From Thalia democratica (taxonomy: Eukaryota), in assembly GCA_965202585.1 (NCBI GenBank), contig OZ241833.1, positions 23,002,001-23,066,000 on the forward strand: DNA of 64,000 nucleotides, written 5' to 3'. Positions 1-61,400 of the stretch are shown in pieces. The translations under genes were made by a program, and so were the position numbers. Each line of letters opens with the position of its first letter. Within the stretch, counting starts at the first letter, position 1. The notes beneath the pieces were generated by a model. The model was not told the DNA's origin. It saw only the letters and a program-made list of their open reading frames with translations, and searched no databases.

Positions 1-1424
1 TATTGAAGACAGTTTTTATACAAATTTGTCATTATTTATTAAAGAGGAATAATAAAAAACGAAATTATTACTAAACCAAGGGAACTTTTTTTATTTTTGA
101 TAAATAAAGGTAATTAATCTTATGCTATTAATAATTTGAACGTAATTACTTTAGGCTTGCAGTAAAAATATTTTGTTTATTATAAGTATGTGTGTAAAAT
201 GAAACTTGGTTTAATTTTGAACAGTAATATAACTGAGACAATTTTGTTTAAACTCATGTGCTATGTGGTATTTGATTACTTAAAGTTTAGTCATATCATA
301 CTAAAGCTTTTAAATTTATTTGGTATTTTTAAATTCTGCACTTGTTCCGACAAACAAAGTTAATTGAAAGAATAATAGAAATTGATAAATATTATTTATT
401 CTAAAAACTTGTTATCAAAAAAAAAGTAAACGTATTTTATTTTTAAACTTCAAACATTTTTTTTTTAATGTTGGTAAATTAAAAAGAAAATCAACAAACA
501 ATTACATAAAAATTAAACTTTATTTAGCGAAAATGAATGTGCAAAGTAAAAATAAAGTAAACAATTAGGCAGGGTAGTAAAAAAAAGAACAAAAACGTAA
601 TTTCACTTTGCCTTAAAAATGCTTTTAAAGATGAAAAAATACATGCAAAAGAAAACTTTTATAATTCTTTTTACATATAAGCTACAAAGATATAATTTTT
701 TAAATGCATTGTTTCAAAATGGTAAGGTAAAAAATACTAAATAGTAAGTAAAAAAATACTGATTAAATTTTATGTGTTGATAAATACTGTAGTATCTATA
801 GCACGATGTGATGATGGGAAAAAATAACTCTGATTCTGTAGAAGAAAAATCATAAAAAACCTTTTTAATATAAAGTTATAAATAAATTTCTGCATTTTTA
901 AAATTGTTCGTAAACTGTTTGAAGTGTAAAAATTGTTTTGTTTTTTTAAAAACTTTTTAGTAATAGAACTAACTGAGTTTTTAACTGTACAACTATTGTA
1001 CCATGTTACAAGTAATATTTGAATTTCTAAAATTATTAATGAAAATTTTTCACGAATAGCTCATATAATCAAAAGTAGTAAAATTTTTATTTATTTATTT
1101 GCATTTAAAGTTCGCTATTATAATTCCTAAGGATTTTTAAGTAGAAATCAATAAAACCTAAGTAAACAAATATATGACGTTGACAGAAAACTTGAACTAA
1201 TTTTTCGTTAAAATTTCAACTTTTTTTATTCTTATTTTTCAGTTACTTTATCTGGGTGCAAAAACAAAAGGCAGGCTAAGTTTTTTGAACAGTGCCATGA
1301 CTTTAAATGCTTAACTAAACATAGACAAGAAAAAAAGTGTAGGCAATGTGAAAAAAAAACAAGAAAATACTCACCTATCCTTAAAACAATTCTTTCCATG
1401 CTTAACTAATGTTCACAAAAAAGT

Positions 1425-4400
1425 TCACGAATTTTTCGAAAAAAATATAAAGGATATAAAAGAAAATACAAGCATTTTAAATGATAACTGGTTCGATCCT
1501 TCTGATGAGTTGGGTTTTTGGGTTTTATTTTTTAAAGCACCTGATTTTTCTTCAGTTTCGTTTCTATGACCTAAAAAGTATTGTCATATTATGTTTCAAA
1601 CTAAAATGTAAACGAAAAAAGTGTATTTAATGCAGAAGTATTATAGTAAGCACGTATAAAAATGTACAAATGTGTATCTTAGTATAATAAGTAGAATATT
1701 TTAATTGGATTATTATTGAATAAAATATTTTAATTCTAAACTTCTTACCACATAATTTTCATAGTTTATCAGTAGTTTTTGTATGATTTTTTAAAGGTTT
1801 TGTTCTTTGTAATTTCAAAAATAGCTTAAAACAGAACTTAACACTTTAAAAGCCTTTTTAAAGCAAGTTTTTATTGTTACTAAATAAGTTATGTAGTATT
1901 TATTTATTTTTGACAAAACATTAAATGTGTGACGGATGGTTTTTAGTTGTATTAGAGCAGATATTTTTTATTTATTTTATACATTATTAAGCTAAAATAC
2001 ATTTAATTATTTATTATAACTAATATTTTTCAGTTTTTCATTAATATTTTAGTAAATTTATTCTCGACAATTAAAAGCTTAACTTTTCACTTTTGGTTAA
2101 ACGTGTTTCTGTAAAATACTAAAACAAGTTACATTACTATTTTAAATTTAGTTTGTATGTATAAAGTAATTTCAAGGAAAAGTTGTTGTTACAAAAAAAT
2201 ATTGAAACTTAAAATTACCATAAACTTAACTTTTTTGTATATTGGATTGAAAAGTTCTTAAGCTCTTAAGCTTGTAATCAAGAAAATTATTCATCTTTAT
2301 TAATTTAGAGAAATAGTGCTTTGTGTAATACATAGTTTAATTGAACTTCTGCAAAAGTAAAAAAAATAGACATTTTATTAATTATGTTATATAGCTGCAA
2401 TGCAACGAATCGGATTATATTATATTAAATTGATATGTATAAACTTAAAACTCTATTAACTGTTGGAGTGTAGGAATACTTACTCGAAATTGAGAAAAAG
2501 TTTACTCATCTATGTTTTTGTAAGTAAAATTACTTTTAAAACAAACTAAGTTTTGAAATGCAAAAAACATATTGAAAAAACTATAAGTCTAACAAAAGTT
2601 TCAAATTTAAAAAACTTAATAAAATATTGACGAAACATTCAAACTAAATATATATCTCTCACGTATTTTCAGCCTAAAAGATTTTTAATTAAATGCTTTC
2701 AAATGACTTATAAAAATCCTAAAATAAGTTTAGCTAAACAGTTTAGTAAGCAATAGTTAAAGGTTTTTTAAACCAATTAACTAAAAATGTGGTGCACTTA
2801 ATTTAAGCTTATACTGTTAAGCTTAGTTGTGATAGTTTAGTCTTTTTAAACAAAGTTTTGTAGTCAAACTTTAGATTATATTATAAACTATTTGATAGTT
2901 TTTTTTTCTCTAGAACAATCTTTTATCTACCATTACTAAACTATATTTAAGTTTTCGTAGAACTATATTTTCGAATTTAACAATTTTTTTGTTTTACATT
3001 GATTTTTCGTGAAACCCTTCTTTAAAAACGGTATTAACAGTAATCACTACTAAAAAGGTCATCATGGAAAGTGTTTAGTATTAGCTATAACAGTTTCAAT
3101 TTTACATAAGTATCAGTCGTTGGAATATTTATTGCCTTAAAAATTTCAATTTAAAAGTTGATTTTAATTTTTAAAGGTAAATTTATAATTAAGCATTGCT
3201 TAAATTTTAATAACTTTATAGTAAAAAAACGATCAAAAAGATAAAAGGTTTTACTTTATCTAACTGTATTAAGACACTTTATAAGGTATTTACTATTGAC
3301 ATATAAAAAATATTGTTTTACCAAATAAAAAAACAGTTTAAAAGTGAAAAAAAAAAAAAGAACACAACTGTTAATTTTGTGTAAGAGCTTTACACAACCT
3401 GTATTTAGTATTGACAGATGCAAAATATTGCGGTAAATAAAAAATGTTAATCATTCTTTTTAGTACCATACATCTTTTGTATGGTCTACTTAAATTAAGA
3501 AACAAATTAGCTTTTTTACTTTAGATAACAGATTATTTTTTTATGTTCAAATTGCAGATATACCTTGTTGTTTTAGCTTACTCAACATTTTTTTTACTTA
3601 AGTTTAAAACGTAAACAAACAAATGATAAAATATAGAAAGTTATGTCTATAGGTAGCTTACCATTTTAAACTTTTATCTTCAAAATACTTTTGTAACAAC
3701 TATAAAATGTTTATTTTTTATGTAATAAACAAGATAAACCAAATTTTTTATGTTTTTTTACTGAACTCATACTATCAACTTAACTTAAAATTAAAAAAAT
3801 GAAACAAAACTATTTTGTTTGAACTTTTTAAGTAGACCTACAATTAATGTGTTGGCTTCTTTAAGTTTTAGCTTTTTTCTGCTTCTGTTTTACGCTTTCC
3901 GTTTCAAAACTGTTCTATTTTTTTTAATGAATGCGCAAACAGATTTATAAAAAAAAAACTTTTAATGTGAACATAAACTATCTTAGTTAACATTATTACC
4001 AGCATCAATGTTGGGGAAGAATTTGTTCCAGAAGCTGCAGTGGGTGATCAGCCGGGAATACTGGGGGCTGTTGAGCGTTGACATGGTGAGGGCCGACGAA
4101 GTTGGACCAATCACGTTGATGCATCTGTCATCTTTCGTGTACTTCTTCCACTCTTCCGCGTCTCCTTCAGGCGTTTTGTCGGAGTTAGGATTGCTGAAAC
4201 AAGATAGTTTATGGTATTTGTGCAAATATTGTTGTATTAAAAGTTTCCACAGGTTTAGTTTAGGTTACTGTACCTATCAAAGTAGAATATTTTTGTACGA
4301 TGTTATAATGAACATATTTTCGCGCAAAAACAAGATTTAAGTTTTAATCTTAAAAAAATTAGCTTTAAAATACGACATGATTGACATAATTACCAACAAT

Positions 4401-5232
4401 AACATTTTATATCAATTAAACTACTCAAACTTTTTCATTTCTTACCCCGTCCTGGCAAAGTTTGCCCACAATTTCATAATGTTCCGCGACAGCTCCACTT
4501 CGTGGGCCGTGTAATTCAAACTTTTGTCCAATGGCAGCCCGAACACGAACTCGATCTCGTACCCGTGCATCACCCCCATCCACTCCGGCCACGGGTTCTG
4601 CGAGCTCCTCTGCACAAAGTGGTAGAAGTAAACCTCCCCGCTGCCGCCAGCCTCGCTCCTCTGGTCGGCCAGGCTCAGCAGCGGGCACACCACCGCCGTG
4701 TCGCCGACCATGTCGTCCAGCCGGTCCCGGTAGAACGTCTCGGGGCTTTCTGACGGGAGGGCGTGCGTCACCGGCTTGTTTTCGCAACTTTTCGCGCCGT
4801 CCTCGCGCAGGCAGCTTGACTTGTACTGCAGGTCTTCCGGCTTCCTGCCGTGCGTGTACAGGAAGTCCGAAAACTCGATGGTGGTCTGCCGCAAAAGCTC
4901 GGAGGCGTCGTCCCCGACCGGGTTGTAGATTCCCAGGTCGAGCCCCTTGCGAAAATCGGTGTAGTTGATCTTGCACTGCTTGCCCATGTCCCATTCTTCG
5001 GTGTAGATGAGGAAATAGTTGCCTTCGTTCATGTTGTAGCCGAGCAGCAGGTTTTTGTCGCTCGACTCGTTCAGGGGCTTCTTCTTCGGGTCGAAACTCA
5101 CAAAGTCGTTGCTGGGAACGGGGGCGTTTGAAAACCTGAAGACTCCCTTGGTTGCCCAATCTTTGTTGACGATGGTTTCGGCGTCGATGTTTTGAAAACA
5201 CTCTATCGTTGCTTCTTTAATGCTGCGTGGAT
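1425..5232 (-). pseudogene. ACHE: Duplicated 3' part of AChE (exons 5-7: 5232-4446, 4193-4000, 1570-1425), without promoter, signal peptide or catalytic Ser
   Basis: Copy of the exons at +5351; splice sites intact; exons 1-4 lie outside the duplicated unit. Confidence 0.85.
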
Positions 5233-6775
5233 CTGTTTGAGTACATTTGTATGTATTAGTATAAAAAAACGTATTAAAGGTTGTAAGGTTGTGATTTTTT
5301 TTCTGCAATTTAAGTGGGCAATAAATAAATTACTTTGTGTTTAAATAAATATTTTCGAGTTTTTTATAACAACGAGTTTCACCTCTATGCTGTTTTAATC
5401 TTGCTGATAATATAGCTTTAATTCAAATTATTACGAGCTTTTTATTATATTAAATTATTACTAATTAATCTTATGCTATTAATAATTTGAACGTAATTAC
5501 TTTAGGCTTGCAGTAAAAATATTTTGTTTATTATAAGTATGTGTGTAAAATGAAACTTGGTTTAATTTTGAACAGTAATATAACTGAGACAATTTTGTTT
5601 AAACTCATGTGCTATGTGGTATTTGATTACTTAAAGTTTAGTCATATCATACTAAAGCTTTTAAATTTATTTGGTATTTTTAAATTCTGCACTTGTTCCG
5701 ACAAACAAAGTTAATTGAAAGAATAATAGAAATTGATAAATATTATTTATTCTAAAAACTTGTTATCAAAAAAAAAGTAAACGTATTTTATTTTTAAACT
5801 TCAAACATTTTTTTTTTAATGTTGGTAAATTAAAAAGAAAATCAACAAACAATTACATAAAAATTAAACTTTATTTAGCGAAAATGAATGTGCAAAGTAA
5901 AAATAAAGTAAACAATTAGGCAGGGTAGTAAAAAAAAGAACAAAAACGTAATTTCACTTTGCCTTAAAAATGCTTTTAAAGATGAAAAAATACATGCAAA
6001 AGAAAACTTTTATAATTCTTTTTACATATAAGCTACAAAGATATAATTTTTTAAATGCATTGTTTCAAAATGGTAAGGTAAAAAATACTAAATAGTAAGT
6101 AAAAAAATACTGATTAAATTTTATGTGTTGATAAATACTGTAGTATCTATAGCACGATGTGATGATGGGAAAAAATAACTCTGATTCTGTAGAAGAAAAA
6201 TCATAAAAAACCTTTTTAATATAAAGTTATAAATAAATTTCTGCATTTTTAAAATTGTTCGTAAACTGTTTGAAGTGTAAAAATTGTTTTGTTTTTTTAA
6301 AAACTTTTTAGTAATAGAACTAACTGAGTTTTTAACTGTACAACTATTGTACCATGTTACAAGTAATATTTGAATTTCTAAAATTATTAATGAAAATTTT
6401 TCACGAATAGCTCATATAATCAAAAGTAGTAAAATTTTTATTTATTTATTTGCATTTAAAGTTCGCTATTATAATTCCTAAGGATTTTTAAGTAGAAATC
6501 AATAAAACCTAAGTAAACAAATATATGACGTTGACAGAAAACTTGAACTAATTTTTCGTTAAAATTTCAACTTTTTTTATTCTTATTTTTCAGTTACTTT
6601 ATCTGGGTGCAAAAACAAAAGGCAGGCTAAGTTTTTTGAACAGTGCCATGACTTTAAATGCTTAACTAAACATAGACAAGAAAAAAAGTGTAGGCAATGT
6701 GAAAAAAAAACAAGAAAATACTCACCTATCCTTAAAACAATTCTTTCCATGCTTAACTAATGTTCACAAAAAAGT

Positions 6776-6921
6776 TCACGAATTTTTCGAAAAAAATATA
6801 AAGGATATAAAAGAAAATACAAGCATTTTAAATGATAACTGGTTCGATCCTTCTGATGAGTTGGGTTTTTGGGTTTTATTTTTTAAAGCACCTGATTTTT
6901 CTTCAGTTTCGTTTCTATGAC
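6776..6921 (-). CDS. ACHE: AChE coding exon 7: hydrophobic, GPI-signal-like C-terminus (not in ORF track)
   Basis: tttttag|GT CAT AGA...; [48 protein letters not shown]; phase matches exon 6; small-residue cluster, spacer, then hydrophobic tail. Confidence 0.78.
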
Positions 6922-9900
6922 CTAAAAAGTATTGTCATATTATGTTTCAAACTAAAATGTAAACGAAAAAAGTGTATTTAATGCAGAAGTATTATAGTAA
7001 GCACGTATAAAAATGTACAAATGTGTATCTTAGTATAATAAGTAGAATATTTTAATTGGATTATTATTGAATAAAATATTTTAATTCTAAACTTCTTACC
7101 ACATAATTTTCATAGTTTATCAGTAGTTTTTGTATGATTTTTTAAAGGTTTTGTTCTTTGTAATTTCAAAAATAGCTTAAAACAGAACTTAACACTTTAA
7201 AAGCCTTTTTAAAGCAAGTTTTTATTGTTACTAAATAAGTTATGTAGTATTTATTTATTTTTGACAAAACATTAAATGTGTGACGGATGGTTTTTAGTTG
7301 TATTAGAGCAGATATTTTTTATTTATTTTATACATTATTAAGCTAAAATACATTTAATTATTTATTATAACTAATATTTTTCAGTTTTTCATTAATATTT
7401 TAGTAAATTTATTCTCGACAATTAAAAGCTTAACTTTTCACTTTTGGTTAAACGTGTTTCTGTAAAATACTAAAACAAGTTACATTACTATTTTAAATTT
7501 AGTTTGTATGTATAAAGTAATTTCAAGGAAAAGTTGTTGTTACAAAAAAATATTGAAACTTAAAATTACCATAAACTTAACTTTTTTGTATATTGGATTG
7601 AAAAGTTCTTAAGCTCTTAAGCTTGTAATCAAGAAAATTATTCATCTTTATTAATTTAGAGAAATAGTGCTTTGTGTAATACATAGTTTAATTGAACTTC
7701 TGCAAAAGTAAAAAAAATAGACATTTTATTAATTATGTTATATAGCTGCAATGCAACGAATCGGATTATATTATATTAAATTGATATGTATAAACTTAAA
7801 ACTCTATTAACTGTTGGAGTGTAGGAATACTTACTCGAAATTGAGAAAAAGTTTACTCATCTATGTTTTTGTAAGTAAAATTACTTTTAAAACAAACTAA
7901 GTTTTGAAATGCAAAAAACATATTGAAAAAACTATAAGTCTAACAAAAGTTTCAAATTTAAAAAACTTAATAAAATATTGACGAAACATTCAAACTAAAT
8001 ATATATCTCTCACGTATTTTCAGCCTAAAAGATTTTTAATTAAATGCTTTCAAATGACTTATAAAAATCCTAAAATAAGTTTAGCTAAACAGTTTAGTAA
8101 GCAATAGTTAAAGGTTTTTTAAACCAATTAACTAAAAATGTGGTGCACTTAATTTAAGCTTATACTGTTAAGCTTAGTTGTGATAGTTTAGTCTTTTTAA
8201 ACAAAGTTTTGTAGTCAAACTTTAGATTATATTATAAACTATTTGATAGTTTTTTTTTCTCTAGAACAATCTTTTATCTACCATTACTAAACTATATTTA
8301 AGTTTTCGTAGAACTATATTTTCGAATTTAACAATTTTTTTGTTTTACATTGATTTTTCGTGAAACCCTTCTTTAAAAACGGTATTAACAGTAATCACTA
8401 CTAAAAAGGTCATCATGGAAAGTGTTTAGTATTAGCTATAACAGTTTCAATTTTACATAAGTATCAGTCGTTGGAATATTTATTGCCTTAAAAATTTCAA
8501 TTTAAAAGTTGATTTTAATTTTTAAAGGTAAATTTATAATTAAGCATTGCTTAAATTTTAATAACTTTATAGTAAAAAAACGATCAAAAAGATAAAAGGT
8601 TTTACTTTATCTAACTGTATTAAGACACTTTATAAGGTATTTACTATTGACATATAAAAAATATTGTTTTACCAAATAAAAAAACAGTTTAAAAGTGAAA
8701 AAAAAAAAAAGAACACAACTGTTAATTTTGTGTAAGAGCTTTACACAACCTGTATTTAGTATTGACAGATGCAAAATATTGCGGTAAATAAAAAATGTTA
8801 ATCATTCTTTTTAGTACCATACATCTTTTGTATGGTCTACTTAAATTAAGAAACAAATTAGCTTTTTTACTTTAGATAACAGATTATTTTTTTATGTTCA
8901 AATTGCAGATATACCTTGTTGTTTTAGCTTACTCAACATTTTTTTTACTTAAGTTTAAAACGTAAACAAACAAATGATAAAATATAGAAAGTTATGTCTA
9001 TAGGTAGCTTACCATTTTAAACTTTTATCTTCAAAATACTTTTGTAACAACTATAAAATGTTTATTTTTTATGTAATAAACAAGATAAACCAAATTTTTT
9101 ATGTTTTTTTACTGAACTCATACTATCAACTTAACTTAAAATTAAAAAAATGAAACAAAACTATTTTGTTTGAACTTTTTAAGTAGACCTACAATTAATG
9201 TGTTGGCTTCTTTAAGTTTTAGCTTTTTTCTGCTTCTGTTTTACGCTTTCCGTTTCAAAACTGTTCTATTTTTTTTAATGAATGCGCAAACAGATTTATA
9301 AAAAAAAAACTTTTAATGTGAACATAAACTATCTTAGTTAACATTATTACCAGCATCAATGTTGGGGAAGAATTTGTTCCAGAAGCTGCAGTGGGTGATC
9401 AGCCGGGAATACTGGGGGCTGTTGAGCGTTGACATGGTGAGGGCCGACGAAGTTGGACCAATCACGTTGATGCATCTGTCATCTTTCGTGTACTTCTTCC
9501 ACTCTTCCGCGTCTCCTTCAGGCGTTTTGTCGGAGTTAGGATTGCTGAAACAAGATAGTTTATGGTATTTGTGCAAATATTGTTGTATTAAAAGTTTCCA
9601 CAGGTTTAGTTTAGGTTACTGTACCTATCAAAGTAGAATATTTTTGTACGATGTTATAATGAACATATTTTCGCGCAAAAACAAGATTTAAGTTTTAATC
9701 TTAAAAAAATTAGCTTTAAAATACGACATGATTGACATAATTACCAACAATAACATTTTATATCAATTAAACTACTCAAACTTTTTCATTTCTTACCCCG
9801 TCCTGGCAAAGTTTGCCCACAATTTCATAATGTTCCGCGACAGCTCCACTTCGTGGGCCGTGTAATTCAAACTTTTGTCCAATGGCAGCCCGAACACGAA

Positions 9901-26400: not shown

Positions 26401-28153
26401 GAGATCTTTTACAAATTTTCTTTTTTTAATAGTTTTATTTTTTCAGCAGTTTTTCAATCAAGCAAAGTTTAACTTTTTTAAAAATATATTTATTTAGAAA
26501 AATGCAACTTTTCTCCGTTGCAAAGCTTTATTAAATCATTTAACAACACACATTACATAAGAAAAAAGTTATTGTAAAGATCTTTCGACTATGACTTTTC
26601 AATAGAAATATCTTAGTAAAAGTAAACTAAAACAAAGTACTTAAATTACGAAAATATAGATAAACTTATAGAATATACAATGACGTAATAATCAAGCGTA
26701 CAGTTTGAGTTTAAAATTAACAAAGGGCTAAAAAACATTTACTGCATACTTTTAAAACCTTTTAGACTAAAAATTAAAAATCAAACTAAATTAAAACAAC
26801 GATAAAATTACAGCACTAAAATTTATGTATTAAAATGTTTATGAAAACTATTATTAAACAAATATTAAAAATAAAGATTTTAAAAAGGGTAGTATGACCG
26901 AAAAGTTTTTTCGTACACCAGGTCCTTAAACAAAGCTTTTCAAGCATTTTTTATATCGTTTAATAAACAATATATATGTAACAAACGAACTTATTCTGTT
27001 TATATAACTGAGCTTTAACGATTGTATGCATAAAGCTTCTAAAATATGTAAAAAATATTAACTTGCAATAAAATAAAAGTTCTCTCCTTGTATTTATAAG
27101 TACACTTACGATTGTCAACTGAGTGCTTGCCAATTCCAGAAAAATAACTCACCTTAGGTTTTTATGATAGACCCTTAAATTAATTTTTCAAGGTTTTTGT
27201 CACATGCTAGTTAATTTGTAAGTGAAATATTTTTAAAGTTTTTTCCACGTAGTCACTAACATGGTATACCACAGTGACAACTAAATTTATAAGCTATGTT
27301 GCTTTTTTATTTGGTAGATAAAACGTCCTTGTGAATTCCACTTAGAGGTAGATTAGTGCAGTGGTCTTCATGGTATTCACGAAGATCACCTTCGGATGCA
27401 CGAAATTTATTCTGAAACTTCAACTAAATACAAGCTTTAAAGTGAACAACAAAAAATGTTAAGTTTTGAGCTTGGAGTGCACATATTTTTCTTTTCAGTT
27501 TAGTGTGCACTGATTTCAATTAGCGTGAGTTTGACACGTGACAAAAAGTTAATAAAGCTTTTAGAGGTTACACAGATAGATTAGCATACATCAGTTTACA
27601 AAACTCTTAAGCTCATGCAAAAATTTAAACAGTAGCTAAATTTTAACTAGACCTCATTTCAACTAAACTAAATTTTTTTTTTTTTTTTAATACTTTCAAA
27701 AATTGTAAATCGTAAATTTAAAAAAGCTTGAAAAATTTAAAAACTCAACTTCAGTAAAAGTTAGTTTGGAAAAGCATGATTTTTTTTTATAAAACAATAA
27801 GGATTATTCCATTAGAACTAATAAAAAAAAACAGCACTAAAGTTATTTAAATTTCATTTTAAACACTTTATCATAATAAAAAAAACTCCCGTATCAACTT
27901 TTGTAACATAAATTATGCCTTTCAAGCATCTCGTTTTATAAAAAAAATTAAATATTCATCCTTAACAATTGCAATATAAAAAGTTTAGTGGATCTTAAAT
28001 CAACTATAAAAATAGGTTGTCGTCTATAAAAGTAAAAAACCGTTGAAAACAAAAGACTTTTATGTTTCCAGTTATTTTTATATGTTTTGGTTTTAAGAAA
28101 ACAAATAGAGAGATCTCAACTGCTGGAGGAGAAGTAATGTATTTATTCTTTTA

Positions 28154-28212
28154 AAAATTTATTTTGCAAACTAAGTTTTGGTCAAAGACCTCGTCAGTGC
28201 TTAAATAAATCT
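28154..28212 (-). ncRNA. Hammerhead ribozyme copy with G12-to-A core mutation (probably inactive)
   Basis: Minus strand gcaCTGACGAGGTCTTTGACC-AAAAC-TTAGTTtgc; the conserved GAAA reads AAAA (position 28179). Confidence 0.7.
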
Positions 28213-29154
28213 AAAAAAAGATATGTGACAGTCATGGAAAATAGCATTTAAACAATTAAATTAAAATAAAAACAAATTATTACTGAAAATTTTTTACTTA
28301 AGAAACTAAACAAATCAAATTTTAATATTAAGACTGAGTTTTAGTAGAAGTTTAAATTTTTAGCTAAGTTTTAAAATCAATATAACAACAATAATAATAA
28401 TAATCATCAAAGCTGTATGTAGCTTTCTTTTTTCTTCTAGATAATTTACAGACTAAACATTGCTTAAGCAAAAGTGTAGTTAATGAAATGAGCTTAAAAT
28501 TTAATCGAAAATGGTGTAGCTTATTTTAATCGTGACGTAATTATTGAAAATTTGAACAATCTTGTGCTTTTAATCGTTATTAAAATTAAAATTCCCGCTC
28601 AAATGCTTTATATGAAAGCTTACAGTTAAAACAAATTTTTACCTTAAAACAAAACAAGTTAAATTATGGTGCTAAGTTTGAATTTTTGGCAAAGTTTAAA
28701 TTCTAGTTAAATTTAAAAATCAAAGAACAACACAAATAAATAAGAATAAGGTTAATAATAATAAGTGGGCTTAAGTTAAGATGCATTTTAATCAAGCTAA
28801 ATTTTATTGTGACTTGAATATTGTAAATTTAAGTAGTTTTGTGCTTGTAATAGTTACCAAAATTTGAAAATTTTGCTTGGATAATTTAGAAAAAAAAAAA
28901 AATTAACTTTAAGAAAATTATAGTTACAAAAATTAAAAAGCATGCATAAAACCTGTATTACGAGTAATTTAAGTTTTGAAGTGGAGTTTTCGGAAGTGCG
29001 GGCAGGAATAAAAGAGTTCGTACCGTTTGTTTAGATTATCCCTTCTGTCTGCTTTAGCGATCGCGACCTTTTCTAATATGCAAGTAATAATTTGTTTTTA
29101 TTTTAATTTAATTGTTTAAATGATATTTTCCATGACTGTCACATATCTTTTTTT

Positions 29155-29213
29155 AGATTTATTTATGCACTGACGAGGTCTTTGACCGAAACTTAGTTTG
29201 CAAAATAAATTTT
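29155..29213 (+). ncRNA. Minimal type I hammerhead ribozyme
   Basis: CTGACGA (29170-29176), stem II GGTC-TTT-GACC, GAAA (29188-29191), minimal stem III AC-TTA-GT, cleavage triplet GUU (after 29198), stem I ...atttatttatgca / tgcaaaataaat with one bulge. Confidence 0.8.
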
Positions 29214-32200
29214 TAAAAGAATAAATACATGTTTCCAGTTATTTTAAAAAACTTTTTTTAAAGAAAGTAAAATCATTGTATGTGATAATAACTTCAAAAA
29301 GAAATTTTTTTGATATTGTGCCTGTATTTGTAAAACTTTTTATAACAAAGTATTTAAAGAAATAAATATTTAGTACAAAAGTAATTAACAATAAACTAAA
29401 AAAATATTTTTTATTTGATGCTGAAACTTGCTTTTTCTTAACCTTAAAATTAAAAAATTATACGTGGTTCAAAAAAAAATTAAATACAATTTATAAAACT
29501 TACAACTTCCTTTATTTTGGTGTCTATTATGAAAAAATCTAACATATACAGCAATTTAGAATTTGTTACTTTTTAATGTTAATGTATTTATACAATGTGT
29601 AAAATCTTTTGAAAATAAGCAACTAAGTGATTATTAGAAATAAATGCTTTTATTAAGTAATAAGTTACTAAAAAAAATAAATTTCTTAAAATCTATAAAC
29701 ATAGATAATTTTGAAACTCATTGTTAAAATTTTAAAAGCTTTTCTTTTTGAAAATCAATATATATGATTATAGATTTCAAGAAATTTCTTTTTCTTAGTA
29801 ACTCATTACTTAATAAAAGCATCTATTTATAATAATCACTTATTTGCTCAAAACTTTTTATGTTTTGTACAGTTATACTTGATTTTTCTGCCAAAACTAA
29901 AAAAAACAAGTATTTCTTTATTTTAGTTGTTATTAACTAGAGAACAACTCATGTTTATTTTCATATTAGACTCGATTTTATTTGTTGAATATATACATAT
30001 TTTAAGATTACTTTGAAATAAAGATTTGTTTAAAAAAAAAACGGTATTTGTTTTAGATATTTTGTTTATTAAGCTAGCGAATCTATAATACTTTTTTTAC
30101 AATGGTAATTTTCACATTTTTTAACTATGTTTTAGGTGATTCATTACTTGGAGCTACTATTATTGTTTAACTTTTATAAAATAAACTCGTTTATTATAAA
30201 CTTTTTAACATTTAATCTTTTATAGTCAATAAGCTTTTTACTATTAGTACTAGTATAATTCTTACTGATTTAAAAGACATGTGGTATATTTTGTGAAAAA
30301 AATTTACTTCTTTTAATATATAATTTTAACTTAGAAAAATTATCAGCTGTAGTCTGCTTTTTCGTTTTTTTTTTTAAACTAATTAAATAATTTTAGGGTA
30401 ATATTATAATATACTACTATATTTAAAATAAATATCACAATAATTAAAAAGTACAGTTTTTAAACCTTAAATATAAATATAATAAAATTACTTATAATTA
30501 CAGTTAAACAATACATTTTTTGCATACAAAAAAAAACTTTTGATTTAGTTTTGAGTACTTTAAAATACATAAAAACAGTCGTAGTTATTTTCTGAACGTT
30601 TTTTGATTTTATTTTCCTGACAATTTTTCCACTTTGCAGTGATTTAAGTTGAAATTTGCATATCTAGAGAGAACAATAATATATAAATATTTTATACATT
30701 GTTTTTATTTTTTATTTTTTTGAATTTAACTTTGCTAACATCTAAATATATTTAAGTTCCTAAAAACCTGTAAATTTTTTAGATAAAAAGATAATTACAA
30801 AGGGTTTTTTTAAATTAATAAATTTATTTTTATTAGTGATAACGAAGCACGATGAGAAATATAAATAGGTTTTTCACAAGCTTTCCGTTAATAGCTTATT
30901 GTCTGATTGTCATTGAGATTTTGATATCTTGAATGGCAGATAAGTAGCTAAAATTGCACATAGTTTTCACAGTGATGACTTGTGCGTTAAAAAAAATATT
31001 TTTAATGCAGTTAAATCGACCATTCAAGTAGGTAACCAGGTTTGTCAGTTTCAACGTCAATCAGAATTTTCTTGCTTGCCTTTTTACGTCATTTATTTTT
31101 GTGTTTTGTTTGATAAGCCAACGAAAATTCTCACGTAGATTTACCTCTTTAATCTTCAGATAGTTCGTAAACAGTTGCTGAAATATCAAAAACTTTATTT
31201 AAAACTTTATTTAAAAGAAAATTTAACTTTCCATTATGTTTTTATCAATAACTTTAAGTACTGTCGAATGAGATGACTTAGTTTGTAGCTGTAACAATAT
31301 ATCTTAATAAAATTTTTACTTTAAAAATTTCGTAAAAACTTTGAAATAAATTATTTAAATAATTTTTTTTAATAAATTTATCATTAAGTTGTTTTGGTTA
31401 AATAATAAATTATTTAATTTTTTTTGTTTCGTTTTTTAGTTACGATGAAATAATTTTTTTAAATGTTTATTTCTATTCTTTCATAATCCTTAAATATGAC
31501 CGACTGGTACATTTTTTAAAATTAATTTTTTAAGGTATATTGCTTATACCGCCACAGAATTTAAGATTTACCATAATATTTAACTTGTCTGCATTATTAT
31601 TATTTTTTTTAAATAAATGCAGTTAACAAAAAGTATTTCTTTTGATAACAATTAGTTCTTTTAAAATTTTGAATTGATGCTAAAACTTTTGTGCACCAAA
31701 ATTAAAACAAACTTTTTTTGCTTATTATACAAATGCTTTATTTACTCGTAAATACCTTTAAGAATAAAACTAAACTTATATATGTGTTTAAATATGTATT
31801 ACTTTTAAACTTATAAGCCTTTTGATTATTTTTAATTTTTGCTTGAGTAAAGCACAAACAATTTTTTACAAACAGGCTTAAAACTATACTTTCTCACCAA
31901 AACGACTGAAAAAAGATAACTTAACATTTTTTAGGTATAATATTGTTTTGTGTTTAAGATAAAAACTATAAGCATCAAGTTCATAGTTTAGGATAGTTCG
32001 AATAAATGTCTTGTAATACTTAACATTATGGCTAAAAAAATTGTTTAAACAGTTATAAAGTTTTTAATAGCCGCTGGTTGTAAACTAATTATCTTTTATT
32101 AATTGTTTTATACCCAATAAACTTCTTTTTTTGTACTAATTTTAAACTTCATGATTTATTCATAAAAATCTCCGCAGAACTCATTGCATTTTTTCTTGCA

Positions 32201-58399: not shown

Positions 58400-58456
58400 C
58401 TTTTATTAAGTACTGACGAGGTCTTTGACCGAAACTTAGTTTGTAAAATAAATTCT
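58400..58456 (+). ncRNA. Third dispersed hammerhead copy, core intact, stem I weakened
   Basis: CTGACGAGGTCTTTGACCGAAACTTAGTT at 58413-58441, identical to copy 1; flanks gta/tgt instead of gca/tgc; followed by a similar aaagaataaat tail. Confidence 0.7.
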
Positions 58457-61400
58457 TGAAAGAATAAATTCATTAATCATTTATAACAAAAACAAATGTT
58501 AAAGCTTTACTCAAAAACTTTTGTTGTTTCAAGTTTTTTTTAAATGTACATGTAAAATTTAATATAAGTTTGATTGGACACGCTGGTAATATTTTTTATT
58601 TCTTAGTGTTCAAACAACTGTAAACAATTAGCTTTAAAATAAACTCGTTTTTCAATTTTAATTGTTTTGTGAAGATATACCTTTTATAACAAGTTTTTTT
58701 TTTGTTTTACAACTAAAATGAAAAAGTTTATCTAATATGAAAAACACAAATAGAGCACCCTAAACTATTAGTTATTCAAAACATAACTTTAAATTCTAAA
58801 ATTCTTCAGTAAGACTGCAAAATTGTAGAGTGACTAGTGCTAGCAACTAAATGAACACAATATTTAAGCAAATATCGAAAGCTTTGCAAAATAGTTTAGC
58901 TAGCTATATAACAAAAAGCTAAATTTTTCTTAAAAGTTGATTTCTTTATATAATTACGTTATTTTTTTTAAAACATAATTTTGTTTTGCAATTAAAATTA
59001 GGATAATGAAATAAATTCAAGATGTAAACATTGTAATACTAAACATTACAATCGTTTTATTAAACTATCTAATTAGTTAGCAATAGGAAGGTATATAGTT
59101 AAGAATCTACTAGCTAGATAGTTGTTACATACATACTATAAGTTTAAAGTAGTAGCCTATAATTTAAAAGCTTCATACAATCTACGAACTACAAGTGTTT
59201 AAAGTTCTATAAACAAAAATTTGTCTAAAGTGTCAATGACTTTTATACAAATCATTAAACATAATAAAATGATTTTTTTTAAGTAGTATGACAAGAAGTT
59301 GTAAGTTTATTTTTAGTTTTAATGTATTGTAAAGCGTTCTTAACCATTATAAATTAAAACTTTGGCTTTAAAACGCAAAATTGATCAAAACTTTGCGTAA
59401 ACTAATAATAACTTTTTATTTCAAGAAGTAATAGTTTTATACTAGCTTATCTAATCAATAATAGTTTTAGTTCAAAACTCTATTTATCATAAGCTATTAA
59501 AATAAGGCTTGATTTCTACAAAGTCTATTATTTATAAGATGGTGAATAATCCTTTTAAATATTATATTTACTGCTATTGATTTTTAGACATTACCATCTA
59601 TAAAATTGTATTTGAAGTTTTAAATAACTTTAATAATAATTTTTTAAATTCTAGTTGAAGTATAAATAAAAACTTTCATGTGTTTTTTATCATAAGAAAA
59701 CATTTCGATAGATAATTTAATAAGCAGCAGCTATAACATAAAATTGAAATTTAAATAAATAAAAAATTAAGTAAACAAATTTTATATTTTAAAAGAATAA
59801 GTCTTAGTAAAATATTCATCAATTTAAAGCATTGATTTTTGTTACGATTTATGTTATACTCTACCTTGAAGTTTTTATAGTTTTATTTTTCCAATGATAC
59901 TAACTTAATTTCCTTCTCAAACTTAAACATATATTCGATATTAAACGTGTTTTGCAAAGATATGTAGTACTTACAGGTTACATTTATTTCTAAAATCAAT
60001 AGTTCAAGTATATAGCATTCTTATAGCTAGTTTAAATCAATAAAGTTATTTTGCATTTACTAAATACTTTTGTTTAATTTTTATATACATGTTTGAAATA
60101 TATTTTATGTGTCATACTAAAATGATATAGCTAATATTCATGATTACTTTTTAAACAACATCAAACATACTTTTCTATGTTTAAGTTAATTATAGTTTTT
60201 TTAATACTATTAGTTTTTATATCAACTTAAAAATTTTACTAACTAATGCTTAAAGTGCAAATTTTTATAAGTCATTAGCTTTTCATTCATAAACATATTT
60301 TCAGATATTTGATAACCTAAAATTGCATTTATTTATTAGTACGAAAACATAACCCTAAAAAAATGTTTTCTGAAATTTAATTTAGAGTTTGCTTCGATCT
60401 TAATTGTTGTTTGTTGCTAAATAGTCTCAAAGTAACAGTAGCTGAAAGGTTGTTTAGTTTTCTTTAATTGACGAGCTAAATCAGTTTGATTAATGTACTT
60501 TTAATGAGTTTATGCGATAACAATACGATTTTATTAGTGTTTGTAATGAACACAAGTTTAGGGTGTATTAGTTGTTTTGTTTAGTACCGTGGTTTACCTT
60601 TTAACATTTTTATGCCTTTAATAAATTTTTAACAGCTTAGTTTTTCTAGACATCATTTAGTACCAAAAACTCTTTAACTGTTATTTATTTATAACAGATG
60701 TTTTTTAAGAGTTGTAAAAAGCTGCACATTAAGCACATTAAAAAGAAAACTCAAAATTCCCAAAATTACATGTTAAAACATTATTAAGTTGCTTGTTGTA
60801 TTTTCACACCTTTTCGCTGCAGTCGAGTTTTTAAACCATTTTCAAAATTTTTCTCTCATACACAATTTACGGAAATGAAAAAAAAACAGACGCAATAATT
60901 CTAAAATTATACACATTTTAACGGAGTTACGAAAACATGCGAGCTTCAAATTAACAGCGAGTTGTGCGCAACCAAGCGGAACGACACATAATCGAAACCG
61001 GATTACAGAGATAAATGGCCGGGCTACAAGATAATGGACTGAAAAAGGCCGGTTTTTAGGAGACTGGCCGACGCCAAATCATAGTCCCACCGACCAAAAA
61101 AGAAAATACGGAACGAGAATAGCTACAAAGTTTGTTTTAATTCGCGTCTTGCATAAAAAGCCCCCGCCGCGCGTGATGGACAGGACCCAATCAGCTGCGC
61201 ATAATAAGTTTTGATTTTGAATAAATCTTGCATTAGCATTAGAATTTAATCCGTTTTTGTTTGGTTTGAAAGGTAAACACGGGTTTTGAGGTCTTTATGG
61301 GCTCGTGACAACATAATTGTTTGAATTATGCAGTTCAGTTTTGATGGTTTTATAACGAAGTACGAAACCAAGCTTTTATGTTATAGTATTTACTAAAACA

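Follow-up and report, generated by a model that had tools for sequence, protein, structure and literature searches.

Here we describe a 1.15-kb insert in the genome of Thalia democratica, located within a 64,000-nucleotide stretch of DNA (assembly GCA_965202585.1, contig OZ241833.1, positions 23,002,001 to 23,066,000, forward strand; hereafter "the window", from whose first letter positions are counted), and interpret it, with little reservation, as the trace of a single event in which an autonomous Hydra-clade Penelope-like element (PLE) inserted and left two 5'-truncated complementary DNA (cDNA) copies joined head to head. The insert is an ordinary broken copy of a protein-coding PLE that is abundant in this genome, belongs to a known clade and displays a published insertion architecture; an inverted upstream copy, a tail at one end, a hammerhead ribozyme motif in the pseudo-long terminal repeat (pseudo-LTR) and target duplications of variable length are all published hallmarks of PLEs. 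An initial annotation, based on the letters of the window alone, had already connected the insert to PLEs, and that connection is borne out by a unit encoding reverse transcriptase (RT) and GIY-YIG endonuclease, by the tail, by the inverted copy and by the hammerhead in the pseudo-LTR. Its further proposal of an undescribed non-autonomous family lacking an open reading frame (ORF) found no support: the 3' third of an autonomous unit of 3,069 bp matches the insert collinearly, and copies of that unit with intact ORFs of 705 amino acids exist.

As a textbook-shaped PLE insertion, the locus matters little in itself. The young, abundant family that produced it, with its intact ORFs, could serve the study of how PLE insertions acquire their unusual shape. 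Its target duplications stand out as sharp, unique sequences, unlike those of many PLE families, which microsatellites conceal.

Anatomy of the insert and its target site

The insert is bounded by an exact 17-bp direct repeat and comprises two copies of the same element in opposite orientation (Table 1). A minus-strand copy of 1,008 bp (28079-29086) and a plus-strand copy of 148 bp (29083-29230) abut head to head with their 3' ends outward, and four bases (AGTA) are common to both at the junction. The plus copy and positions 28137-28284 of the minus copy form inverted arms of 148 nt that are 98% complementary, with AATAAA on the 3' side of the hammerhead motif in each. The bounding repeat and these arms are as the initial annotation had given them, save for a change of core residue G12 to A in the left motif. 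When aligned to the parent unit described below, the minus copy is collinear with unit positions 2118-3126, the 58-bp tail included, at 95.6% identity, and is 98.5% identical to its counterpart at another locus, L004; the plus copy corresponds to unit positions 2922-3069. Orientation and comparison of 30 loci showed that the family consensus upstream of the 148-mer follows the interior of the left (minus) copy and not that of the right. A tblastn search with the intact 705-residue ORF located the last 38 codons (residues 668-705) at 29085-28972 on the minus strand with 100% identity, so that a remnant of the endonuclease is present where the initial annotation had seen no trace of either RT or GIY-YIG. 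No ORF or promoter of its own was seen at the window copy.

The 17-mer is a true target-site duplication. Because each flank of the insert occurs only once in the genome, the 17-mer does not belong to the repeat; direct repeats of 10-16 bp, all of different sequence, lie exactly at the boundaries of 10 of the 12 other copies that have both ends inside the fetched loci. Among random pairs of 52-nt segments from the window, a shared run of at least 17 nt occurs in 0.15% and one of at least 10 nt in 1.3%. The duplicated targets (the 17-mer and the ten sequences of 10-16 bp) are AT-rich but unique. Relative to the family the two arms share variants at position 133 (found in 1 of 22 other copies) and position 146 (7 of 22), and only three private changes separate one arm from the other, a pattern that fits one event, one source and a young age. 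A 33-mer predicted for the empty site had no exact match in Joint Genome Institute (JGI) metagenome contigs, a result that counts neither way.

A Penelope tail of 58 bp separates the left arm from the left 17-mer. Two forms of 3' end were found among 30 sampled copies: sequence ends just past AATAAA in 16, and continues for the same 58 bp before diverging in the other 14. In tandem arrays this 58-bp tail is the start of the 5' untranslated region (UTR) of the next unit. Exactly one arm is tailed in each of the eight two-armed insertions that were resolved (the window, L003, L013, L018, L026, L041, L042 and the L005/L027 pair). Biochemical work has shown that the tail spans the distance from one internal RT start site to another (Frangieh et al. 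2024, PMC11167929), and the occurrence of one tailed arm per resolved two-armed insertion bears on this two-start-site model of PLE reverse transcription.

Inverted repeats combined with a flanking direct repeat could also recall a DNA transposon or foldback element, similar to a miniature inverted-repeat transposable element (MITE), having 148-bp terminal inverted repeats and a 17-bp duplication. We give such an origin almost no credence, for several reasons: (i) the left arm is not terminal, lying 58 bp from the duplication; (ii) the arms are the 3' end of a retroelement, and the interior is the same retroelement, continuous from one arm; (iii) seven other copies are one-armed, five of them still duplicated (L007, L010, L011, L023 and L028); and (iv) the duplications range in length between 10 and 17 bp. 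A transposon of this class would have inverted repeats at both ends of every copy and a duplication of constant length; it was rejected as a candidate, being refuted by the anatomy of these other copies.

Table 1. Features of the insert and of a related fragment in the window; unit positions refer to the 3,069-bp parent unit.
Feature	Positions	Strand	Details
Left target-site duplication, 17 bp	28062-28078		Exact repeat of 29229-29245; flanks single-copy
58-bp tail at 3' end of minus copy	28079-28136	-	Matches unit positions 1-58 and 3070-3127; in tandem arrays, the start of the 5' UTR
3' UTR (pseudo-LTR region) of minus copy	28137-28968	-	Contains left arm (28137-28284) and a diverged pair of internal repeats, each about 280-340 bp
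Hammerhead motif of minus copy, core G12 to A (GAAA to AAAA), probably inactive	28154-28212	-	GAAA in 28 of 30 sampled copies
ORF remnant: last 38 codons of GIY-YIG endonuclease and stop	28969-29085	-	Found by tblastn; stop (28971-28969) placed by collinearity
Head-to-head junction, AGTA shared	29083-29086		Alignment of minus copy reaches 29086; plus copy begins at 29083
Inverted, 5'-truncated 148-bp copy without tail (right arm)	29083-29230	+	Unit positions 2922-3069
Intact type-I hammerhead motif, short helix III	29155-29213	+	Predicted cleavage after GUU, between 29198 and 29199
Right target-site duplication	29229-29245		First two bases ambiguous with element end
Separate, older 75-bp 3'-end fragment of same or sister family, intact hammerhead core	58402-58475	+	92% identical to unit positions 2997-3071

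A third copy 29 kb away had initially been taken as the sign of a dispersed family. The family is indeed dispersed; the sequence at 58402-58475 is itself only a 75-bp fragment of a 3' end, in which neither a tail nor a duplication was detectable, the longest word shared by its flanks (7 nt) being at chance level. About 450 bp downstream of the insert, and unrelated to the element, lies an inverted repeat of 42 nt, 88% complementary with a 51-nt spacer (29666-29707 and 29759-29800).

The parent element and its truncated copies

The initial annotation had proposed a genome-wide search for further copies and for an autonomous RT/GIY-YIG partner or tandem monomers. Interrogation of the 802-Mb genome with the 148-mer returned 1,564 first-look candidates, the 40 that were scored being 96-98% identical to the query, and both the partner and tandem units of it were found. 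The full unit of 3,069 bp consists of a 117-bp 5' UTR, one ORF of 705 codons, and an 834-bp 3' UTR ending in a hammerhead and AATAAA. This length is the period of a tandem array on another chromosome, reached by extending the longest copies (L036; G000:C2:48182000-48191999), in which the units are 99.9% identical, the frame of the first is open and that of the second has one stop; the array is preceded by an inverted, truncated 2.1-kb copy with a tail. At another locus (L041; G000:C4:91380000-91389000, positions 1328-7651) two full-length copies lie head to head, both with an intact ORF of 705 amino acids and each with a short upstream piece of 3' end (85 and 147 bp), the tail being present on the outer end of one only. 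Head-to-head pairs thus occur at L041 and also at L042, and a whole-genome protein search revealed several further copies with open ORFs. The family is young and abundant, with about 1,500 3' ends at first look, and still contains intact ORFs.

The ORF is predicted to encode a telomerase-like RT with a C-terminal GIY-YIG endonuclease. An AlphaFold model of the 705 residues, built with 34 homologues, has a predicted local distance difference test score (pLDDT) of 88.6, and its best fold matches by Foldseek are telomerase RTs (E-values of 1e-9 in PDB and 4e-10 among Swiss-Prot models). A separate model of the C-terminal 146 residues (pLDDT 87.5) best matches I-TevI and the GIY-YIG domains of T4 EndoII and UvrC; against the catalytic domain of I-TevI the probability is 0.99 and the template modelling (TM) score, normalised by target, is 0.71. 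I-TevI is also the top PDB sequence match of the C-terminal profile, at a weak E-value of 0.19, while the whole ORF, searched as a profile against PDB sequences, gave noise only. YRDD and the other RT motifs are invariant across the 34 homologues, and residues of the endonuclease are conserved (IY..YxGS, R, H, E and N). Endonuclease-containing (EN+) PLEs are defined by the combination of a telomerase-like RT with a C-terminal GIY-YIG nuclease. This ORF belongs to the full-length copies of the family, not to the window copy.

First-look copy counts, which are rough, rise toward the 3' end of the unit, from 184 (unit positions 705-1157) through 483 (1900-2099) and 566 (2130-2329) to 1564 (2922-3069). 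The 5' ends of other copies fall at many different unit positions, and the closest relatives of the window copy (98.5% identical) are longer copies that extend into the ORF. To judge from these sequence comparisons, the gradient is the pattern of 5' truncation and not that of a separate short family.

Five independent 5' ends lie within about 45 bp of one another (29040-29086 in the window; unit positions 2107-2153 in L005, L006, L026 and L028), and they adjoin the sole GC-rich patch of the 3' region (GGTCGCGATCGC). We read this cluster as a pause site, not as the boundary of a subfamily, because its starts are offset by a few bases and the copy counts to either side are only 17% apart; the clustered truncation points may mark a hot spot at which RT pauses or switches template. 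The same start positions (2107, 2108, 2118, 2122 and 2153), falling in so narrow a stretch of the unit, could instead be taken to favor a distinct, ORF-less hammerhead family of about 1 kb, non-autonomous and mobilised in trans by PLE proteins, that constitutes a lineage of its own; an origin of animal retrozymes from PLE pseudo-LTRs has been proposed (bioRxiv 10.64898/2026.07.22.740005), in keeping with such a family. We consider its existence improbable in view of the collinearity of the window copy with the ORF-bearing unit, without rearrangement and with 38 ORF codons included, and of nearest relatives that run into the ORF; the clustered starts, moreover, are a few bases apart and share no single fixed end, and the counts either side of them (483 and 566) are close. 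Equally improbable, in our estimation, is a related scheme in which a sub-genomic RNA of about 1 kb, devoid of the ORF and possibly marked by the clustered 5' ends together with the repeat-containing 834-bp 3' UTR, would be preferentially copied by the proteins of the element, as a retrozyme-like non-autonomous lineage splitting from its autonomous Hydra-clade parent.

The repeats of the 3' UTR comprise two diverged copies of about 280-340 bp, 74-78% identical (28287-28873 in the window; unit positions 2338-2919). Remnants of hammerheads were sought in these internal repeats and none were found. In a separate survey, about one quarter of the 31-mers sampled from positions 27600-29700 were present in many marine or seawater metagenome runs from several studies; the host, its close relatives, or at least the repeat family are common in marine plankton samples.

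The hammerhead motif

The hammerhead core, CTGACGAG-GTC-TTT-GAC-CGAAAC, occurs on the plus strand at 29170-29192 and again at 58413-58435 (pattern CTGANGAG...CGAAAC), and dinucleotide-preserving shuffles gave 0 expected matches to the core pattern. Every conserved core base is present in the right-arm motif, along with a GUU cleavage triplet, a helix II of 4 bp (GGUC/GACC), a helix I that is long but interrupted, and a helix III of 2 bp with a 3-nt loop. The left-arm motif, on the minus strand, carries GACCAAAAC, that is, the change of core G12 to A (GAAA to AAAA); GAAA is kept in 28 of the 30 sampled copies. G12 is the general base of the hammerhead reaction.

Near the 3' end, and always at the corresponding place, a hammerhead occurs in each of four sister families of this genome (58-67% protein identity). 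The core and a helix III of the form C-NNN-G-U-H are identical in all four, and the sequences of helices I and II differ wholly from family to family (GGUC/GACC, CUCGUUU/AAACGAG, UCCC/GGGA and CUCCUAUA/UAUAGGAG). This covariation of helices I and II between families supports a conserved RNA structure, and the presence of four sister families in one genome makes it a natural source of covariation for the PLE hammerhead. Our assignment is made at the level of the motif, from the core pattern and the covariation; Rfam models reported no hammerhead at the gathering threshold in the whole window, or at E-values up to 10 in positions 27500-29800. PLE motifs with a short helix III fall outside those models.

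Further Hydra-type PLE families, at least three in number and 58-67% identical in protein sequence, occupy ten other loci (L043-L052; C1, C2, C6, C7, C8, C9 and C10). Several of these loci have open frames, and each carries a hammerhead whose helices I and II are distinct in sequence; at L043 and L044 a hammerhead motif lies on both sides of the ORF, the two about 2.75 kb apart.

The 7-nt stretch of helix III is ACUUAGU here and ACAUUGU in other families, in both cases a palindrome except for the central U. By analogy, this near-palindromic helix III fits the dimer-dependent PLE type; for PLE hammerheads with a short helix III, cleavage is reported to depend on a second same-sense copy and to be poor in vitro (PMC4209133).

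Two hammerhead motifs about 1 kb apart might suggest a retrozyme-like unit, self-cleaved into a linear or circular RNA of about 1 kb. The prospect is very slight: the motifs are on opposite strands, so that no one transcript has both in sense; the left motif carries the change at G12; and the helix III of 2 bp with a 3-nt loop is of the type for which a second same-sense copy is reportedly needed (PMC4209133). Because the motifs lie on opposite strands and that of the longer arm has lost G12, the locus cannot yield an RNA delimited by hammerheads. A retrozyme was also rejected as a candidate: it is a non-coding unit delimited by same-sense hammerheads, with no full-length coding form, whereas here the two motifs face opposite ways and the sequence comes from a coding unit. 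The hammerhead is a feature of the parent element's RNA and is without a role at this locus.

Proposed mechanism and comparison with known elements

Published PLE biochemistry and anatomy suggest how a single insertion of the Hydra-clade parent could produce the observed arrangement. The GIY-YIG endonuclease of the element would nick both strands of the target with a stagger of 17 bp, and each exposed 3'-OH would prime reverse transcription near the 3' end of the element RNA. One priming, at the downstream start site, would generate the tail, and the other, at the upstream site, would leave its copy without one. Both cDNAs would then stop early and presumably be joined through the four bases of microhomology.

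The ORF and its homologues contain motifs characteristic of the Hydra clade: RLRWK, ADKT, YRDD and a CxCX5C linker (CNCRTKNKC), together with CxxC and CxH (C666/C669 and C695/H697) around the E and N residues conserved in the endonuclease. Craig et al. 2021 (PMC8557442) describe this clade by RWK, DKT, CxCX5C, CxxC/CxH, canonical hammerheads and a short unit, and report an inverted upstream copy and a tail that is often at one insertion end only. The present family resembles that description in each of the protein motifs, in a full-core hammerhead near the 3' end, in a unit of about 3 kb, and in its partial tandems, inverted 5'-truncated upstream copy and one-ended tail. The unit of 3,069 bp is slightly over the typical length of less than 3 kb. 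Most of the nearest ESM Atlas clusters lack annotation; a taxon is recorded for a few, which are cnidarian, and GIY-YIG or RVT_1 occurs in others.

Several observations weigh against the interpretation as a single insertion of a Hydra-clade PLE. Two concern the clade itself: the tail is 58 bp here, compared with the 30-40 bp described, and the targets are AT-rich unique sequence and not the (TA)n of most families (PMC8557442), a preference reported as a tendency of most Hydra families and not as a defining feature. The parent element is assigned to the clade by motifs. Pfam gave only a sub-threshold match to RVT_1 (25.7 bits) on the whole ORF, and on the C-terminus nothing above threshold and no score for GIY-YIG; because Pfam gave no match above threshold, the domain assignments come from predicted folds and motifs. 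No empty allele of the target was seen, and since the flanks are single-copy the assembly contains no paralogous empty site. Finally, the scheme of two nicks and two primings is one that we infer by analogy with published PLE work.

Comparison with other systems helps to place these features. Elements of the Penelope/Poseidon group, including PAc of Anolis (PMC11167929), likewise have two alternative 3' ends with a fixed tail interval between them and a hammerhead within the pseudo-LTR; they belong to a different clade, and the family described here has DKT, not DKG, and another conserved pattern of Cys and His residues in the endonuclease region. Twin-priming inversions of LINE-1 are also head to head, 5'-truncated and flanked by duplications, and are explained by priming from both nicked strands. 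The segments of such LINE-1 inversions are different parts of one RNA, whereas both arms of the present insert come from the same 3' region, and reverse transcription would therefore have begun twice at the 3' end. Animal non-LTR retrozymes share type-I hammerheads with a short helix III and PLE-style insertion scars, and are probably mobilised by PLE proteins. In contrast to the insert in the window, which is a truncated piece of a coding element with its hammerheads in opposite orientation, they are short and non-coding, with hammerheads in the same orientation and often in tandem.

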